NCBI GenBank assembly: GCA_977030845.1
Contig: OZ365113.1
Span: forward strand, 21,266,001-21,330,000
DNA from: Fimbriosthenelais zetlandica
Lineage: Eukaryota
DNA: 64,000 nucleotides
Direction: 5' to 3'
Each line of letters starts with the position of its first letter. Positions within the stretch are counted from its first letter, which is position 1. This document shows, piece by piece, positions 1,115 to 50,810 of this stretch. A model generated the notes under the pieces. It made no database searches. It was not told where the DNA came from and saw nothing but the letters and a program-made list of their open reading frames with translations. The translations under genes were made by a program, and so were the position numbers.

Positions 1115-1879
1115 ATGGTGAATAACACCAGTGAGGCTGTTGGTGTGTCCATATCCAGCAGACCATTATCAGGAGTCACAGCCACTACATCCACCACCAC
1201 ATCCACCACCACAACAATGACCTTATCATCACATCACACCTATGCCGCAGTCGTCATTGCCGACCCTGTCGATGACGTGGAACGCACTGCCATCGGCATC
1301 CCTGTGCGCCTTCTATGGGTACCTTACATAATATTCACAGCAGTGATCTTAGTGCTCATCATGGTGTCTTTCTGCAAATTCCACCGGAAACACGGACACA
1401 AATATAGGCGGCGACGAATGGAGCTCTTTCAACAAGGGGCCAACATGGCCTCAATCATGAATCAGCTCCAAGGTGGCGCCACAACCACCTCCACAACCAC
1501 CGGAAGTACACACCTTCCACCGAACGGGGGTGCCCCTTCTGCCACTTGCAATACACAGATGCCCTCAACGTCAGTGATGACGAGTCGAGAAACTAATCCT
1601 AATAGCTCCACAGTGAAAAAGAAACAAAAAGCAAGGCGGAAACAAAGACCTTTAACCTTCATGCGAAATGCAAATGGCAGCATGGTAGATTTACGTTGCG
1701 GAGAACGTAATAGCATGAATATCTTCAAGACGCCATTTTCTACACATGCAGAAAGTTCAATATGGACGTTGCCAAGTCGTAGCGGTGCGTACCGGACATT
1801 AAACTCACCGACAGGGAACAACTATTTCTCAGACGAAGACGATGATGATGTGTTACTCATACATTCAACTAAACTCTGA
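1115..1879 (+). CDS. Intronless single-pass membrane protein, 254 aa, unknown family (Ser/Thr-rich ectodomain, one TM helix, long cytoplasmic tail)
   Basis: Longest ORF in the window, closed upstream by an in-frame TAG at 1067. Coherent topology: N-glycosylation sequons at N3/N4 (NNTS), Thr-rich stalk, hydrophobic segment LLWVPYIIFTAVILVLIMVSF, then Cys plus a basic stop-transfer cluster (CKFHRKHGHKYRRRR). Tail ends YFSDEDDDDVLLIHSTKL. Confidence 0.8.
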   Translation: MVNNTSEAVGVSISSRPLSGVTATTSTTTSTTTTMTLSSHHTYAAVVIADPVDDVERTAIGIPVRLLWVPYIIFTAVILVLIMVSFCKFHRKHGHKYRRRRMELFQQGANMASIMNQLQGGATTTSTTTGSTHLPPNGGAPSATCNTQMPSTSVMTSRETNPNSSTVKKKQKARRKQRPLTFMRNANGSMVDLRCGERNSMNIFKTPFSTHAESSIWTLPSRSGAYRTLNSPTGNNYFSDEDDDDVLLIHSTKL

Positions 1880-39808: not shown

Positions 39809-39953
39809 CTTCACCAGTAGTAGCCATAGAGGAGTACTTCATGGCGTGGCCCATGATGGGACATTGCTTGGCGTAACCCAGCAACTGGGGTGCGAAGCGG
39901 CGTAGATGGTTAGTGGGCACCTTGGTGAGGAAAGGACAACAGAGGGCCTTCAT
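39809..39953 (-). CDS. ALAS: 5-aminolevulinate synthase, first coding exon (mitochondrial presequence with heme-regulatory motifs 1 and 2); exon spans 39958-39809
   Basis: Reverse strand translates to MKALCCPFLTKVPTNHLRRFAPQLLGYAKQCPIMGHAMKYSSMATTGE, matching the ALAS presequence pattern CPFL..P...L......LL.YA..CP.M (compare vertebrate ALAS1 [31 protein letters not shown], from memory). Polypyrimidine/CAG acceptor at 39959-39961, context gaaccATG, donor AAG|GTCAGT in phase 1. Too short for the ORF track. Confidence 0.9.
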
Positions 39954-41429
39954 GGTTCCTGGAAAGAGGACAAAGAAACATCACCAATATGTACAAACGT
40001 TTAGTTCTTTGATTAGAATATTGAAACGACAGGTATGAATAGAACCTGAATGACATGTAGTCTCTGAAAATTAGACATAAAATTAATTTCTACATAAATG
40101 CTTACCTAGGAGAAAGTTTATGCCAATATTCATCTTGAATGAATTAAGTATATACATAATGCCGTCACCAAACAATAGTTATTAGTGAAGAAACAAAATG
40201 ACGGAATCATTAAGGAGTGTCAATAGTATGTACAAAGTCCTTGTCAGAGTATAAATAATAATAAATATCGCAGATAATATCCTAGAAAATATATTATAGG
40301 ATTATCCAAAATATATAATATATCAAGTCACTCAGTTATAGGGCTGAGCTTATCCCGAAAAACTCTGAGCTGAGTCTCCAAGAGGCAAATCCAATTACAA
40401 ATAATTAATAATATTATGTGATTTCCACCAGTTTCAGGCAGTATAATTAGAGATCTGCGAGTTGTTAGGAGAGTAGAAGTGCTATAAATGACTAGTTTGA
40501 TCTTTTGGTCTCCTTTGATTTGAGTGTGATAACCATCACATAAATCAATTCCGTGATGACTCCCATCCTTGAAGTTCAACCAATGAGAGTTCAAGAAATT
40601 TAAGTAAAACCATGGAAGGCGGGGTGTGAAAGTAAGAGGTACGTGCCATATTTAGCATTGTCCTCGGCTCGAAAATTTTCCCATATAAATCTACTTAAAA
40701 TGTTTCAGTTAAACCACTGCAAAAATGTCCAAACTTTATCCAATTTTCCATTGGTGACCTATGGTATATTATAGGCTTAATCATAAAATGACTTTTTTAA
40801 CACTGCAATTCTGTCCAGTGTACATTTCTTTTTTCAAAGGATATACTGAGAAAACCTCCTTACACTGTCCAGGATTCAGCTCCCACGAGCAGCTCATGAG
40901 GTGCTCTTAAGAGGTCACATCAACAAACGTGCGGGCGAGCACCCGTTTTACATCACCATGGTTAGAGATAGAAACCCATTGTTTAAACCATGCATTGACC
41001 TATACTGCCGTAAATTTCCATATGTTCGCACATATAATTTGCGCAGGGCCAGGAGATTTTAATTCAAGATCATAATAAAATTTGTATTCTTTCCATATAT
41101 AATACCACCTACATCTAAGGTTCGGAAGCAATTCTACAATCCCCGAGTAAATTAAATGCATTTTCTTCGGCTGAAAGTTTTCAGTTCTGGTACGCATAAG
41201 GCAATTGTCATCCTCTGACAACCAACTAAAAACTAGAGATTGTCAGAGATCGGCAATTGGTTTTTGAAAATCTGGAAAAGGTTGCCAGTTGTTGGCAAGT
41301 GGTTTTCAGGGCATTTTGGGTCAGCTGCAGGTTTAGTGCTGCATAATGAACCCCCAGCCAACTAAACTGCGATAAGTAGGGAGTAGGTCTGCATTCAGTT
41401 GCTGACAACTCTCAGACTGCCGTCTCGGG

Positions 41430-41524
41430 CTAGGTTTGTGAGGGTTAACCTAACCCTAACTTTTAAACCTAGGTTAACCCTAACCCTAGCGCAAACGCAG
41501 AGCCGGCTTCTGTATGGCTCTCGG
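41430..41524. mobile_element. Probable non-autonomous interspersed element with telomere-like (TAACCC) units, inverted repeat and short hairpin
   Basis: ctaggttt (41430) and aaacctag (41465) form an inverted pair around agggttaacctaaccctaac; further taaccctaaccctag; then agagcc...ggctct hairpin. Family not identified. Confidence 0.35.
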
Positions 41525-44500
41525 CGAACTTTAAGAGTTAAAATTCATGGGGAAGTTGCCAACTATTTGCCAACATTTCCACGACTATCACAATTTTGTT
41601 ATGATGGTACTATTTCCATAATAGATAGATATAAGGCTAGAGAGATCCTAACTCAAATTTGATATTTTATCACAAGTAAATCATTAATGTATAAGTCTCT
41701 ACGGGTACCGGTACATGATTGTCGTTTTTTTCTCGGTTCTATTAATCAACAGTCTACCCATCATTAGCACGTCAAGCTGACACACAAAAGTCACCAGTCA
41801 ATATTACGTTGGCTTAATATTAAGAGGTCAGGCGAGAGGGTGAGCACTATGAAAGTGCTCAAGGGAGGAAATGGGCAGATCCGAACAGTGGCCACGAGGT
41901 TTTGATCACGTACGCATCTCTACAGAATATAATGTGGTACAGGGGGTAGAAAAGGCATACATAGCAAAGACAATAAATAAATCAGATATTTTTCGTTATC
42001 TTCTACGGACTTATAATGGGGGGCTATATCTAATATAAATCCTTCATTGGTGACAATATTTGGACAACTTTAGGGACTTTTAGCAACAATAGTATACTCA
42101 ACTATTCTTGCTTTTAGTTTCACCCTTATACAATAATTGGATGGTGATATTTTCTGGATTTTCTTGCGATATAACTTTTGCAGTAAACTAGTTAATTGTG
42201 CAGAAAGTAATTTCGATCTGGCATTTGACTTGTATTTGAGTTCAGACCCCTTGATGCACAGCAGTGTAAATTAAACCAGATTAAACTCGGTGAGACCGAT
42301 GCAATGTGTGTGCACATATAATCTTCAGCTTTCATGGATAAACCAAAAATGATCAGGAAAAGTAGAATACATTCTGACTTCAAGGAGTCAATACCCTACC
42401 CAGACACGGTGCCTGGTATACAGATCATTTTACAATCTGTTTATATTCAAAGAATCACTCGTTTGTACACAGAACACTCTTCTAGTCAGGGATTGGCAGA
42501 TTATGGAGAAATATGCATTCATATTTTCTATGCCCCCGAACCTATATATAAAATTTACTTCCCACGGTAGTCGTGCTCAGGGTGCTGCATATATTAAACA
42601 CCAGACAGGGTGTCGAGCAAGATAAATTAGTGTCAGTTTTTTCATGAACATTTGACGTTAAAAATATGTCTAATTGTTGCATTTGAGCAGCGGTAGCAGT
42701 CTAGACAGGGTAAAGTACTGTAGGGTTGATAATATAAAAGGATTACATTGACAATTTGTCAGAAGGTTCAACCATGAAAAACGCAGCAGAATCTAGGGCG
42801 AATAACTCGGGAATATTTCGCGAATTGAAAATGGCCGCGAGTTACACTTTAAAACTCATAAGCCCGTTTTATAATAGTTTTTCCCCTAAACAAAATCGGA
42901 CCAATCATTCACAGCTAGATTCCGAATAATTGACAATTTGAAATCAGAAGTGCCTTAGATCTATTTACTTTGAATTTGGATAAGCCCTATTTATTTTTTA
43001 CCGTATTTCATTTTATAATTTGCTATATAATTTTGAGAATAATTTGTTGAACTTTGGTCTCCACAGAATTAGGTTACAAAATTAGTGTTCCGTACGTCCC
43101 ATAGATATAAAAAAATATTCCATCTCAGCCAATCAGAGCGCATAGACGGCAATTCTCACATTCCATTGTGACATGTTCTATGTGTTATTGCATAAAAACA
43201 CATGAAGAAATTTTTATACACGAAACTTGACAAACAAGTTTTCATAAGGAGATACGGCACTCGAACAAAATGCAGGACTGTGATTCCTTGCTCCCAAAAA
43301 ATTCAGTTTTCGGGCGCTAAGGAGGTGGGGAGCCCTATCAATGGAGCGCTATCAATGGTATTTCTTAAGTTCAATGGTTTGTTTATTTTTAAACCCTGCC
43401 CAGTCAATATATCCAACCTTCCCTTCCACAAAATGTATATTAATTATGATAGTGTACACATCAGGACTTCCACACACACACATATATATAATATATATGC
43501 TATTCCATATCTTGAAAATTAATGCAATGACAACGCTCATCTGCTGGGCTTTAAATTAAATACACATGAGTTATCGGGCCTTTTCATCAATTCGCAGATT
43601 TTTCATCATTCGCGGACCTCGAAAAGCGCACCGAGCCGTTTATAAAAGCTACAAGTAAACAATTAACTGAAACTATGAACTTCTCAGTTAAACAAACCCA
43701 TATATACTGAATCAGAGTACAGGTACAATCAAATCCAATAGGCCTCCAGCATTGCCCTCAAGGCATGCTATAATATATACGGGACAATTAAGGTTTTCAT
43801 TCTGATTTTGAGACAGAAACTTCATTCATAGGCCAAGGCTTCATAAACTTGAAATTATTTATCTTTAACCTAGATCATTGAGTGACAGATTAACAAAGCA
43901 TCCAAGCATTTTTAAATGCTATTACTGGAAGTCGCACGGGAACAATGCGCTATGAACTGTCACTGTGACAATTTTACGATTTGAATTTTCAATGATCAAA
44001 ACTACATGTATATGAAAAGACTTGAAATGTATGTTGACAAGACCATTGACCCAACAAAAGAACTGTGCCGCAAGATACAAAGACAATAATTTCCATAGAA
44101 AGGCATTCATGATTATACCAACCGGGCAACACACAGTATGAGATTTCAAGCGGAAATTAAATGAAAAATGATGACACAAATTAATATCGGTCTATCGGAA
44201 TATTGAAGAAGTGAACTTTCTATATTGTAAACACTCTCACGTGGAGTTAAGGTAATGTTTTTCGGAACTAACCTGCGGAGAGCGAGTTGGAGCTTCGGAG
44301 GAACATGGTGGTTCTGCCAACCGATGTTCACAGTACAGTACCAAATGATGGGAGGATGGAGATGTACGCTACTTATATACTACATTCAATCACTACCGTA
44401 AATCACTATCTAAACAAACCTGAGCTGCCTCTTACCCTTTACAACCTATTTTCTATCTACATTTTGTATTATACTATGTACAGATGTACGAATACAAATC

Positions 44501-45887
44501 TTTAAAAAACTGAGATACTTTAGGCTTAAAACAAAGTTTGTTATCCAAACATTACATAATAAGACAGATGAGTTGACCTTTGTGGGGGTTATTTCTATTA
44601 GAGGATTTACGGCAGGAAAAGTGTCCTGTCGAGGCAATAGCTTGGTGGGTGAGCAGCACTATATTTAATTATGGATATGAAGGGGGTTGGGGCAACGTGC
44701 CCACATCCACAGAGGAGTAAAAGGTTTTTTCCCCCTTCAGCTGGAAGTCATTTGGTTGACCATTGAACCATTATTATATTGCCCCCCAAAAAATATTATA
44801 AAAGTGGAAAAGAAAGCGAGTGCAACAGATGAGTGATAGCCAAAAAATATTATTTATGTTGTTTTAACACCATATAATAAATAAACCAGATTATGGACAC
44901 AGCCCTGGAATCAAGCTAAACTTGGTTTTATCTTACAATCTAGATTCATACTCCGGAACCATTGAGCAATTATGAACGTGAAAAAACGAACTTGGAACAT
45001 GGCAACATGTCAATACATGTATATTGTTGTCACAGGATCTGAGCTTAACATTATATCGATGAACGATCATTTGGAATATGATGGAATTATTGGCGCCTAC
45101 AACGAGACAGCTTACTGAACAATAATTTTGTTTTTTGAGGAATGAAAAAGTTAAGATCAAACCCTGTGCTACATACTATAATATGTACCTGGGTGGGTGG
45201 GTTAGGAGAACAATATGTGCATGCCTGGCATTCTGCTTTCACTGCTGGGATATTGACATCGTGCTTATATACATCTGGGTCGATGGAGGAAAGTTTAAAC
45301 AGAGGATAAAGCCTTCATCCGTCTATTCCCAACTTATACACATACCATCATATACTCGCATGCAAAATGTATGTTCACATGTCTATTATACACATAGTCC
45401 TACCTTAAAGGAGAGAAATGGCTTTTCATGAAAGCATATAAAGTCGTATTGTGTTAGTTGGAATATCTTTTAAAGAATGTCACAAAATGATAATTTGGAA
45501 TTTAATATTTCCATAGACATGACTATGATATTTCTTGAATAACGGCAACTGATATACATCAAGATGTCCGTTGTCTAACCTTTATTCACAGCCTTGATTT
45601 CAGAGTAACAGGTTTCTCACACATTAATATATAAATAGTGGACGCAGTTACACAAGACCAGTTATTCTATGTAACATGTATGTACTGTGGTGTGGGTGGG
45701 ATCGAAAGACTATAGTATAAAACCATAGAGTCCTCCCATACTTGTTTACACGTTCAACTACAATAGTTCTGACATGCATCTTGAACATAGATCTGCACTG
45801 TGCACACATAACCTTCTGATGCAGGTTGGTTATATAATTAAATTTAAAGTAATTGATAGTAATTTAAGAGACAAATACAGCACATAC

Positions 45888-46003
45888 CTTGGAATTAGAT
45901 GTATCAAAGAGGGAGGATCCTTGATCTGAGAGGGATGAGTGTACGGTGGGGATCGGGTTGAGGTGTGGTTGATCTAGTTATTCTCCGAGAAGCACCAGAG
46001 TGA
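45888..46003 (-). other. Candidate non-coding (5' UTR) cassette exon of ALAS
   Basis: Pyrimidine-rich acceptors giving exon starts at 46003 and 45925, donor AAG|GTATGT at 45888, no ATG inside. Lies between the putative first exon and the ATG exon. Confidence 0.3.
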
Positions 46004-46905
46004 CTGAGAGATGGATTGACTTATGAAGCAGAGGAAGGAAGCTAATGTATGTGACCTGAAAGAACCATGTCATAAAGGACAGGACTTAGGTAAAAGACCC
46101 TTATGAAAGTAAAATTGTTATTAGAAATACATCATGTGCAAGATGTAACATGAAACAGTTATTACACTGTAATAATAGGGAGTGAAAAATTAATTAAAAG
46201 TTAGATAACAGTTATAACTCGTAAAAGCATAGTCTGACAAAAGTATATAATTTCAAGATGTACTACTATATTTAGGTAAGGGTAGGGTGTGTGTTCTCAA
46301 ATCACACTGGCTAACAAATAATTGAGTAAATATACCGTATCCAACCTGAGATAGATTTACTGTATGAATACAAATTTCAGAATGACTTTTCCAAGCTTAA
46401 CCCAGTTCACCAGTGAAATATCTTTTTGAATATAATTCAATAGAAGGCCCACATTTTTTCAATGGACCCGCATCACAAAATTATAGTAAATGACACTCTC
46501 TTTAATTATTTTACGAAATATAACTTGCTTGCTACGCATTTAGCACATTACTGCCAACAAAAGGGATTATATTTCAGTAATTTTACCTGACGGTAATATA
46601 ATGTATAACACTACTGCCTATATAACGTTTAACTGGTGAACCCCAAAGTCAATATAGTTTCATTAAATAATATGCAATGTAATGTAACACTAACACTCTC
46701 TATGATATAAGTGGTTCATTTGTGATTGAAGTTACGAAGCTATAAATTGAAGTTGACAATTAGGCTACAAATTGATGATGTTAAAGAAAGAGAGTGCAGC
46801 CATTTTCAAATTTGAAAACTTCAAAGACTTTTAAAGTATTAAAGTAGGGAATTTTCTACCCTTTCTCTAATCTATACAGGACAAATAGAGAGATTTATGG
46901 CTTCT

Positions 46906-46929
46906 GGGGGGGGGGGGGGGGGGGGGGGG
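46906..46929 (+). repeat. Poly-G tract (24 G)
   Basis: Seen directly; further runs at 47128-47145 (18 G) and 48632-48644 (13 G). Confidence 0.9.
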
Positions 46930-49900
46930 CTACGTGTAAGAGACACTTCCAGCAACTTGGATGAGGCCAGGTGAAGTAGACACAGGTAGAAACTGGCCTT
47001 GACTTCAAAGCAATACAGGTAGGCCAGAAGCGTCACATGTGATCATAGACACACACAGGTTGGAGATTGGGATTAAATGGTGGAGTCAGGGATAAACCCA
47101 GCAGTGATGTGATTGGTCTTCTGGGGCGGGGGGGGGGGGGGGGGGAGCAGGTAGGCTTTGGCCTTGGGTGGAAGGGTTTACAGCGAGAGAGAGGATTGAC
47201 GTTTTTGGGAGAGGGGGGAAGATGGGGCCTTAACACCTGGTTGAAAGATGTAAGACATGATTTATAAACTGTAGAAATTATTGCCGCAATTAAAATAGTC
47301 AAGACAGTGATTTCCTCAAAGAAGTAAAAAAAAATCACGAATGTCGTACTTTTAGTCCATCTCTAAACTCTGGGTTTTTTATAATTTAATTACAGATAAT
47401 GTCGCAAATTAGGTCAGCTGCTCCCGTCCTTCCCCTCCATTCCTGATCACATAAATGTTTTTACTCCTCCAAGGAATAACATTAACCAAACCAACAAGTA
47501 AAACAAATTATGAAACTCATAGCAAGCATATCAATTAAAAACATGAAATTTTCTGGTTAAAAAAAATGAAAGGAAAGCCACATTCATATCATCCTGATTC
47601 CATTACTTTATAGTTTTGATTCAAGAACCATATATATGCATGACGAGTTCGTGACAATGTCTTATCTATTACAATTCTAAGAATAAAATAGGGGTAAGAT
47701 ATACTCAGTGGGAGTTGACCGGAAGGTATTTTTGAAAGTGGAAAATATATTCTCAACTACATAATTAAATACTATCGATTTTAACCACTGTGTCCTGGTC
47801 TGGATTTCAATGGATAAATCAGCACCTAATATTGTAACAAGTTAAAAGATATCAGATAAGTGAGGACCCGATTCTAATAAAAAGTGACAGAAAATCCAAC
47901 AACAATGTGATTATAATCCACCACGTGTACTAGTATTTCCTCCAGTATCTCGTTTGGCCAGTCACTGCAGCAGACCACACAAATCAAACAGGCAATTTGT
48001 AACATTGTAACAAGTTCAGACTTTTCAATTAATATATCTGGCTCTTCTTATCGGGCAAACTTTTGCACTCATTTACTTACATAAATAAGACATTACATCA
48101 TCACGCACATTTTTTTTTTCATTCTTCCCTCCTCATGATCCCACCCCCTGTCCTAATTCTATCTGATCAACTTACATGTAGGCTACATGTAATATCTTGG
48201 GTCTTTTATCATTAAAAGAAATTGTCTTTTCCTTTAAAAACGACTCACTTACACAAAGAAAGTAAACGTCAGCCTCAAGTAAAAGGACTGAAGAGAGTTA
48301 TACCACTGACTGCTTTTACAGGTGAAATGTTAGTTTTTATGGGAGGTTACCTGGTTAAGTACGCTTTTCACGAGGAAACCAAGGCAATACTCCCTCAGTC
48401 GATATATATCGTGCAGGTAAATTACGGTACTCAATATTGACTTAAGGCTATATATTAGCCTTCGGTTCCCCCTGCGCCTGCGGATGGGGAAATAATAATG
48501 GTTTTAGAGGACTTGCAGGAGATAGAATTGGCTTGTTTCCCATCTACACAGATTGGTTGCTAGGCAACATCACAATGACATCCTTCTAAGGCACCGATAT
48601 TTCATTAATTAGTAAAGGGGAAATGCGGGCCGGGGGGGGGGGGGAATCTTATCATTGCCTTGTTCTTGTCATTTCTTTTCTAGTGCCCTACCCCGCTTTG
48701 GACGTTGGCGGGCATGCGCCTCCTCAGACTCATGTCCCGAATTTGGTTTACATAAAATTTTATGGTTCATAATATGGCCTGGTGATTTATGTTAGCTGTT
48801 TACCCATGTCAAACTGGTTAGACCCTGTGTAGCTTGCCCTCAATCTTACCAGTAATTATGGTATTTTTGAGTGCATGTTTTACCATTTATCATTCAATTC
48901 TATATCTTCACCTTTACAATTACAGCTAATACTTGGTTGTACGTTAAGTATCTCTCTTAGTTTTATTTTTGTAGTTGCTCTTAAGGTTTGTGACTGACAA
49001 TGTAGTAGAGCACCCTCCAGTTGTGCACACTCTCTTTTTCCTATCTTTTCGTTTTTACACGAAAAATGTCCCAAGGAGTAATTTTGGGAACCGTTTTTTT
49101 TGTTTCTTTTTTTAGAATAGACCTGTTCGATATAAAATTAGAAAGAGCACGAATCAGTAAATTTTTAAAAGTAAAAATCATGAGATGCACGAGCACTTTT
49201 CATGTCACCTCCTATCTACTGAGTTATTTCTATTGAACCGTCATTTTATTTTTGGGACAAAACTTAAAAACTTTGGAGAATAATATTGTCCGTGGCGCCA
49301 CACTGGGTACGGTATTAGACAAAATATTCGCCTTGGGACCAATCCCGCTATGTGACAGATATGCAGGCTAGAACGATATTAGTGGCGACCCCTGGGGTAA
49401 ACTAAACAAAATGAACCTATAGTTTATACATGGAGGCAGGCCTACACACATACCGATAGGTAAGCTAAACACAAAAGCATTATTATAACCTTTGGATCAA
49501 TTGGCACGATAGTTCGAGAATTATCATGCCAACCATAATTTGTTGAGGACAAGTAAAACTTGAAATAGACTATGGCATATTTTTTAATTTTTTCTAATAA
49601 CAATATTTTAAGGGAAGGATATCATATGAACTTGAGAAAATTTGCGATTATAAACGTCATAAATATTGTAACGAAGAAGACTCATGATGACAGTGCAGAA
49701 AATATAATCGACTAAAATACATATATATGCTGGCCTCGTGCTGACGCATGGATCTATACATTATAGAAAGAACTCGTTGCGCATGATATAAGATCAGGGT
49801 TAACGACTGGATGGGGAATTTGAATGGGGAGTGGCTGGCCTGCCAACTCAGCCAGCAAATGTGGGAGGAGTTCCAGTGGACTGAGTAGTTTTGTATTTTC

Positions 49901-50695
49901 TTGATTCAAATTTAAAGCATTTTTTCAATGTGATTAAACAGATAGAGAACATTGTCATTGCTTTTTATTAATATTAAATTTAATTCAAAGAATTGGGCCT
50001 AAGTGGCTAAGACTACTGACTAGTATTAAGACATTTAACTTTAAGTGCTGGCAGAAATATGAATGTTATAATTTGAGGAAACCTCCAAGTGGAGGACTTT
50101 TGAGGTAGAAGTGGAAGTAAAATCTTAACAATTATATCTAAGCCTTTCCAATTCCAGGTCAATTTCCATGGTTATGGGGGTACTAGTAGTATCCTAATTA
50201 TTAATAGCTTGGACAGACTCAGAGACAGAGCCAAGTTAGAGGCGAGTTCTCTACAATCAATATTAATTATTAGTAATATTAGTACTACTAGTACTAGTAG
50301 TAGTACTACTAGGCCTAGGGACGGATACTTCCCGGGTTGTACCGGTACTTGTAGAAGTTGTTATCACAGGCGAAAAAAGATGTTTTGACATTTAATTTAT
50401 ACCGGCGTAACATTATGCACTCTAGTCAATGAGAACGTGTATAAGCAGGGACAGCTGTCCCAAACCAAGGGGCGGGAAGCTCACTGTCAGTGACACTCGG
50501 ACACTCCCACTCCGACGACGACAAGTCCCACTCACCACTGTCTCAACTCAACTTCTTTCTGAAGAGTGCTTGCATGTGTTCCATAATAACGTGACAATAA
50601 TGACCTACCACACAATGACTAACCTTAATTTACCCCGTACAAACTACATACACCCAATACCACTACATATATTTATTATTCAAAGTTTCACTTAC

Positions 50696-50775
50696 CTGAA
50701 ATTGATTTTTAGGAGTGGTGCCCTTGCACTGAGGGCGACTCACGTTCGATCCCTGTCTCTTATAAAACAGGAAGT
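50696..50775 (-). other. Putative untranslated first exon of ALAS (5' boundary uncertain)
   Basis: Consensus donor CAG|GTAAGT at 50696/50695, no ATG in the exon, adjacent to TATA/Inr-like and ETS/CRE motifs, 10.7 kb upstream of the ALAS ATG exon, which starts with a splice acceptor and so needs an upstream exon. The link to ALAS is inferred. Confidence 0.55.
50715..50743 (-). promoter_or_regulatory. Iron-responsive-element-like hairpin
   Basis: Minus strand GUG A GU C GCCCU CAGUGC A(A)GGGC AC CAC: CAGUGC loop, 5-bp upper stem with one 3' bulged A, unpaired C five pairs below the loop, lower stem GU/AC plus GUG/CAC. Confidence 0.5.
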
Positions 50776-50810
50776 GACGCAGAGCACAAGCCACAACTTT
50801 TAGTTTATAT
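50730..50810. promoter_or_regulatory. Dense, probably bidirectional core promoter (ETS/CRE composite plus TATA/Inr-like pairs on both strands)
   Basis: Plus: TATAAAA 50761-50767, CAGGAAGTGACGC 50768-50780, Inr-like GCCACA (A at 50793). Minus: TATAAAC from 50809 with Inr-like GTCACT (A at 50775), and TATAAGAG from 50764 with TCAGT (A at 50730). Confidence 0.5.

Follow-up and report, generated by a model that had tools for sequence, protein, structure and literature searches.

With moderate confidence, a hairpin on the minus strand of the 64-kb stretch of annelid DNA analysed here (the window) is regarded as a 5′ IRE in the non-coding first exon of the single ALAS gene of this pleistoannelid, a reading that comes from the DNA sequence and its predicted signals. 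The control of ALAS by IRP, which textbooks give as the link from iron supply to haem synthesis, has to our knowledge been demonstrated experimentally only for the erythroid ALAS2 of vertebrates. Among invertebrates, annelids are the principal group with haemoglobin as blood pigment, and an IRE on their single ALAS would tie the making of this pigment to iron in the way seen in the red cells of vertebrates. If the reading is true, this hairpin would be the first lophotrochozoan candidate for an ALAS IRE and would extend iron-gated haem synthesis to animals outside vertebrates. The features on which the argument is built are collected in Table 1, in which, as in the text, slashes within splice sites mark exon–intron boundaries.

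Table 1. Observed and predicted features at the 5′ end of the annelid ALAS gene (positions in the window).
Feature	Position	Strand	Basis and remarks
TATAAA box	50804..50809	-	Sequence, motif scan; first T 34 nt upstream of the Inr A+1
Inr-like TCA(+1)CTTC, predicted start at 50775	50771..50777	-	Motif scan; fits YYANWYY and BBCABW
Predicted non-coding ALAS exon 1, 80 nt, no ATG	50696..50775	-	Sequence, motif scan
Second TATA-like box, TATAAG	50759..50764	-	Motif scan; 34 nt upstream of CTCA(+1)GT
Second, weaker donor-like AAC/GTGAGT, one mismatch	50738..50746	-	Motif scan; overlaps the 5′ lower stem
IRE-like hairpin	50715..50743	-	Sequence, RNAfold, rule scan; SIREs core rules passed with one 3′ bulge
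Hairpin n07-n25 pair, U-A	U50738-A50719	-	Sequence
Hairpin unpaired C8, five pairs below the loop	50737	-	Sequence; bulged C in the minimum-energy fold
Hairpin upper stem GCCCU/AGGGC, five Watson-Crick pairs	50736-50732 with 50724-50720	-	Sequence
Hairpin loop CAGUGC	50731-50726	-	Sequence; canonical SIREs motif 1
Second Inr-like CTCA(+1)GT, inside the hairpin loop	A at 50730	-	Motif scan
Hairpin extra A, between loop and 3′ arm	50725 (or 50724)	-	Sequence
Perfect donor CAG/GTAAGT	50690..50698	-	Motif scan; exon ends at 50696
Predicted intron 1, 10,737 nt	39959..50695	-	Between exon 1 donor and exon 2 acceptor
ALAS exon 2	39809..39958	-	Acceptor ttccag/GAACC, donor AAG/GTCAGT; Preseq_ALAS and tblastn

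Read from the window sequence, the minus strand from 50743 to 50715 is GUGAGU-C-GCCCU-CAGUGC-A-AGGGC-ACCAC, in which the lower stem (GUG(A)GU with ACCAC) contributes five pairs and one bulged A. The loop has the CAGWGH form expected of an IRE, with C14 and G18 able to pair, C8 is present together with a paired n07-n25 whose n25 is not G, and there is a lower stem, which in IREs is of variable length. The sole departure from the canonical IRE form is the extra A, which can be read either as part of a 7-nt loop or as a bulge at n20b. When the local 51 nt were folded with RNAfold, the lowest-energy structure was the hairpin with its C bulge (-14 kcal/mol, z -1.66), and 13 of 200 shuffles folded as well as the hairpin segment; within the spliced predicted 5′ end it is kept in the minimum-energy fold, but the ensemble probability of its stem is only ~0.29. 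An earlier reading of this DNA, made from the letters without database searches (the sequence-only reading), had described the CAGUGC loop, the five-pair upper stem with one extra 3′ A, the unpaired C and the paired lower stem, and both sequence and fold bear this anatomy out. An origin of the stretch from a repeat or a mobile element was rejected, since it is single-copy in the 447-Mb assembly and the interval contains no repeats.

The SIREs core extends from n07 to n25 and requires CAGWGH, C8, five upper-stem pairs and the n07-n25 pair, and one 3′ bulge is permitted at n20b-n23b, as in SLC11A2 and EPAS1, both of which have it at n21b (PMC2896125). Compared with these published core rules, a check that the sequence-only reading had proposed, the hairpin conforms, with its bulge at n20b. 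The five pairs of its upper stem are all Watson-Crick, yet the extra A lies by the loop, and verified bulged IREs have n21b instead. Like the IREs of SLC11A2 (DMT1) and EPAS1 (HIF-2alpha), the hairpin carries one unpaired 3′-strand nucleotide in a five-pair upper stem; unlike them, this nucleotide is an A adjoining the loop (n20b or 7-nt loop) and not a U bulge at n21b, and the DMT1 IRE is located in a 3′ UTR, unlike the annelid 5′ hairpin.

The end of the hairpin lies 19 nt upstream of the donor CAGGTAAGT, on the same strand. This 9-mer occurs only once in the window on either strand (128 kb counting both) and is also the only AGGTRAGT, and the remaining donor-like sites in the 24 kb upstream of exon 2 are every one mismatched. 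The CpG observed/expected ratio reaches ~0.7-1.05 over 50.2-51.2 kb (~1.0 at 50.7-51.2 kb), whereas its median for the window is 0.47, and further CpG-rich patches are found between the hairpin and exon 2, at 42.5-44.5 and 48.9-49.8 kb. A transcription start at 50775 is predicted from the TATA and Inr motifs by themselves; from there, the leader after splicing would measure 85 nt and carry the hairpin at +33 to +61. Goossen and Hentze reportedly found in 1992 that translational repression needs a cap-proximal IRE, within roughly 60 nt. The main elements of this arrangement had been pointed out in the sequence-only reading and were recovered here, namely an exon-like stretch free of ATG (the 80 nt from 50775 to the donor), a consensus donor (CAG/GTAAGT, exon end at 50696) and an Inr some 30 nt from the hairpin (about 32 nt upstream of its base).

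The gene to which this predicted exon would belong is recognizable from exon 2. The acceptor context of exon 2 is tgtcctctttccag/GAACC ATG, with a strong polypyrimidine tract, and the ATG at 39953-39951 (minus strand) opens a product, MKALCCPFLTKVP...CPIMGHAMKY, that corresponds to a presequence with haem-regulatory CP motifs. The ORF matches PF09029 Preseq_ALAS at 35 bits (Pfam) and is also matched by annelid ALAS proteins (tblastn). Exon 2 opens 5 nt ahead of the ATG, preceded by a strong acceptor, and an upstream non-coding exon must therefore exist; in the ALAS gene of Capitella, too, an intron ends 5 nt ahead of the ATG (gcag/GCGTA ATG). The sequence-only reading had linked the exon to ALAS over 10.7 kb, and the ALAS presequence exon is indeed found 10,737 nt downstream on the same strand. 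Predicted intron 1 yielded no Pfam-recognisable coding ORFs and no repeats in an ORF Pfam search and a repeat search, and the presence of another gene between exons 1 and 2 was rejected, the intervening ORFs being without Pfam match. The link between exon 1 and ALAS, drawn from position, strand and splice signals, is rated as probable.

The catalytic ALAS exons are situated outside the window, at C19:21244319-21247209, 19-22 kb past its low end, and tblastn searches with annelid ALAS proteins located an exon with a second CPFL motif at C19:21254106-21254017 and another ALAS exon at about C19:21249216-21249100. The introns are large in the 5′ part of the gene (~51.7 kb for intron 2) and its 3′ half is compact, a layout into which a 10.7-kb intron 1 fits. 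On the opposite strand, inside ALAS intron 2, the window also contains a 254-aa ORF (1115-1879, plus strand) with Thr/Ser-rich tracts, one hydrophobic segment and a CpG observed/expected ratio of ~1.0. Its match to Neur_chan_memb is weak and below threshold (E 7e-4; 20 bits, the cutoff being 28), and the ORF may represent either a gene nested in the intron or a terminal exon.

The genome holds one ALAS (TIGR01821), and its other matches are weaker paralogous aminotransferases. In a maximum-likelihood tree, this ALAS falls in a clade with those of Glycera, Capitella, Ridgeia, Paralvinella and Helobdella (support 99/99), and Owenia, molluscs and a nemertean fall outside that pleistoannelid clade. 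A vertebrate ALAS2-type locus, for instance from a fish, was rejected by the same tree. No ALAS closer than ~77% protein identity was found in a representative-library search, two homologue searches and the tree.

The resemblance of the hairpin to the vertebrate ALAS2 IRE, represented here by the human element GUUCGUCCUCAGUGCAGGGCAAC (NM_000032:13-36), goes beyond what the IRE rules prescribe and extends to gene-specific stem and loop sequence. The hairpin core, UCGCCCU CAGUGC (A) AGGGCA, and the human ALAS2 core, UCGUCCU CAGUGC AGGGCA, are identical at 18 of 19 positions, and among the positions that the rules leave free the identity is 6 of 7 (p about 1.3e-3). Eight other IREs, including those of TFRC, FPN, mACO, DMT1, FTL and the annelid's own ferritin, agree with the hairpin core at 7-11 of 19 positions overall and at 1-3 of the 7 free positions. 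The two elements have the same target enzyme and are identical in the loop CAGUGC, C8, n07 U, n25 A and the stem arm AGGGC; both are cap-near in a short non-coding first exon, with the annelid ATG just inside exon 2, as far as the annelid side of the comparison is predicted. Unlike the ALAS2 IRE, the annelid hairpin has an extra A where the loop meets the 3′ arm, a C instead of a U at n10, so that a G-C pair replaces G.U, and a different lower stem, with a bulged A. Its host has a single ALAS and not an erythroid paralogue, and the annelid element is known here from sequence alone.

The partners of such an element are encoded in the same genome. A ferritin IRE, CUUUG C UGCGU CAGUGA ACGUA CGGGC, is located at C25:12977428-12977454 (L015:8428-8454), within a region that comprises a TATA box, the IRE and the first coding exon (C25:12977376-12977700; L015:8376-8700). 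It is cap-proximal, with a canonical C8, and lies ~25-50 nt after the TATA box, the ATG following 137 nt further on. The ALAS hairpin has in common with it the C8, the five-pair upper stem and the CAGUG loop, and presumably the same IRP; unlike the ALAS hairpin, the ferritin IRE is fully canonical, has no bulge and stands in the same exon as the ATG, and the two stem sequences differ (10 of 19 core positions identical). Exons of an IRP1/AcnA-type aconitase are found at C10:42443178-42454911, and in the earthworm Eisenia a recombinant IRP binds both mammalian and earthworm ferritin IREs (PMC4184891).

Three observations were made in passing around ferritin. A review gives G as the nucleotide at position 8 of the ferritin IREs of annelids (PMC8466369), whereas the ferritin IRE of this annelid has C there. 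The 10 kb upstream of a second ferritin-like exon, at C10:31457052-31457195, proved free of IRE-like motifs (C10:31447201-31457200), and the gene of this exon may be an IRE-less, e.g., secreted, ferritin. About 8 kb upstream of the ferritin gene with the IRE stand three tandem tRNA genes (L015:109-534, minus strand) with 169 nt spacing, each with an 18-nt intron, two of the three being identical.

In the proposed mechanism, ALAS transcription would start near 50775, and splicing would join the end of the 80-nt exon 1 (50696) to the start of the presequence exon (39958), giving a leader of 85 nt that has no upstream ATG and places the hairpin at a distance of 33-61 nt from the cap. Under low iron, the apo form of the IRP1-type cytosolic aconitase would bind the AGU pseudo-triloop and the bulged C, and the bound IRP would block 43S recruitment on the ALAS mRNA. 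ALAS, and hence haem synthesis, would be made only when iron is available, as with vertebrate ALAS2.

Predicted IREs have been described in the ALAS 5′ UTRs of Ciona, Strongylocentrotus purpuratus, Nematostella and Apis, and also in teleost ALAS1 (PMC3904948). The same source credits the Ciona ALAS IRE to Piccinelli and Samuelsson 2007 and, citing that work, gives an ALAS IRE as proposed for the ancestor shared by vertebrates, other chordates and echinoderms (PMC3904948). Likened by description, the annelid candidate and these invertebrate cases are computational predictions in the leader of an unduplicated ALAS; unlike the annelid candidate, none of the ALAS IREs predicted there comes from Lophotrochozoa, and our literature search found no report of an ALAS IRE for annelids or other lophotrochozoans. 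The premise of the sequence-only reading that ALAS1 mRNA lacks the element stands with a qualifier, namely the predictions for teleost ALAS1 (PMC3904948).

Conservation in related species, which the sequence-only reading had named as a check, did not turn up in the 5′ ends sampled. The 5′ leaders (95-271 nt) of seven ALAS transcript contigs from the annelid clade contained no IRE-like motif even when the rules were relaxed, nor did one mussel ALAS transcript leader or the 10 kb upstream of the ALAS start codons of Capitella and S. purpuratus, the last a species for which an ALAS IRE has been predicted (PMC3904948). Clearly, the element is not one that annelids in general possess. These relatives are distant (the nearest at ~77% protein identity), and the assembled leaders may derive from other first exons. 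Metagenome scans, one an exact scan for the 24-nt hairpin and the other for a degenerate N-terminal coding pattern, returned no match. The iron-gated haem synthesis put forward in the sequence-only reading has a mixed record: its sequence claims held, and the single ALAS, the Capitella intron, the ferritin IRE with an IRP1-type gene and the 18/19 core agree with it, whereas the absence of the element from the other sampled annelid ALAS 5′ ends speaks against it.

Covariance models add little on either side. The Rfam IRE models, a further check named in the sequence-only reading, gave no match to the hairpin at the gathering threshold or at E<=10, and the control, the genome's canonical ferritin IRE in a 91-nt search, was likewise missed at E<=10; because Rfam also misses this canonical IRE, the negative result on the hairpin is not counted as evidence. 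A purpose-built model (R1), trained on eight non-ALAS IREs including the ferritin IRE of this genome, gave the candidate hairpin 6.1 bits with a wrong parse and an unrelated, context-free hairpin that passes the rules 7.9 bits; the ferritin IRE scored 27 bits and, being a training sequence, is no independent control. With its eight training sequences, R1 is dominated by TFRC-like primary sequence and therefore does not discriminate.

It is conceivable, if unlikely, that the promoter and the first exon are real and that the hairpin is no functional IRE or is bypassed in most transcripts. A start at the second TATA/Inr pair (A+1 at 50730), where TATAAG stands 34 nt before CTCAGT, could yield an ALAS mRNA without the hairpin; splicing at AAC/GTGAGT (50744/50743), a one-mismatch donor over the 5′ lower stem, could remove it from the mRNA, but the perfect donor at 50698 is the stronger of the two. 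Failing these routes, the extra A or competing folds would have to block IRP, an idea to which the non-canonical upper stem and loop and the low ensemble probability of the stem lend some weight, as do the sampled annelid ALAS leaders without an IRE. The covariance models, which do not score the hairpin, point the same way, but their Rfam part is uninformative for the reason given. An IRE-like motif in a given 80-nt exon would be expected by chance at ~5e-4, and the agreement with the ALAS2 IRE at 6 of 7 free positions is difficult to account for unless IRP binding was under selection.

We give an equally low rating to the possibility that the hairpin is a chance look-alike in intergenic or intronic DNA, outside the ALAS mRNA, whose true first exon would lie elsewhere, for example in the CpG-rich patches between the hairpin and exon 2 (42.5-44.5 or 48.9-49.8 kb). 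The rule-based IRE scan, which required a CAGUGH loop, C8 and five pairs and permitted one 3′ bulge, found the hairpin as the only CAGUG-loop match on both strands of the 64-kb window. Under a Markov-1 expectation, 0.73 rule-passing matches are due per 128 kb (0.2 without a bulge), and the motif alone is therefore not beyond chance; in addition, the exon was defined only after the hairpin had been noticed, and a canonical, context-poor match occurs nearby at C19:21265385. Context is what a chance match would leave unaccounted for: the sole IRE-like match of the window and its sole perfect donor stand within 20 nt of each other on the ALAS strand, below a well-spaced TATA/Inr pair, a coincidence of the two on one strand at that distance being estimated at ~5e-4. 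The core is moreover ALAS2-like, and within the 24 kb upstream of exon 2 the donor by the hairpin is the one that fits the consensus, all others being mismatched.

The nearby match served to calibrate the chance rate of IRE-like matches. It is a canonical motif, GUCAA C CCCUU CAGUGA AGGGG U, at C19:21265374-21265399 (L004:9374-9399, plus strand), 615 nt before the start of the window; it falls within ALAS intron 2 and reads in the direction opposite to the gene. A donor-like site, AAG/GTGGGT, follows ~20 nt downstream, and the motif is without clear gene context.

Even if the hairpin is a 5′ IRE of ALAS, its homology with the vertebrate ALAS2 IRE, as opposed to convergence, is doubtful. A continuous distribution of the ALAS2-type IRE from annelids to vertebrates was not found, the element being absent from the other sampled lophotrochozoan ALAS 5′ ends. 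If the two were homologous, iron control of ALAS translation would date to the last common ancestor of protostomes and deuterostomes, and would have persisted in ALAS2 when the gene was duplicated in vertebrates; many lineages, among them most of the annelids sampled, would have lost it or limited it to alternative first exons. The near-identical ALAS2 core makes it testable whether the ALAS IRE was gained once early in bilaterians or several times.

That the inverted repeat GCCCT(N7)AGGGC works otherwise and independently of IRP, as a palindromic transcription-factor site or as a pre-mRNA hairpin steering donor choice, is very improbable: its position, no more than ~50 bp from the predicted start and flanked by two donor-like sites, with a second hairpin (CCUGU...ACAGG) directly upstream, would suit such a role, but no known factor site was matched, and the exact CAGUGC loop, the C five pairs below it and the ALAS2 IRE match would be left unexplained.

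At the very start of predicted exon 1, the window also contains a ten-pair hairpin, UUCCUGUUUU with GAGACAGGGA, at 50773-50750 (minus strand), in whose loop the second TATA-like box sits; if the mRNA starts at 50775, it would form a cap-adjacent structure upstream of the IRE.
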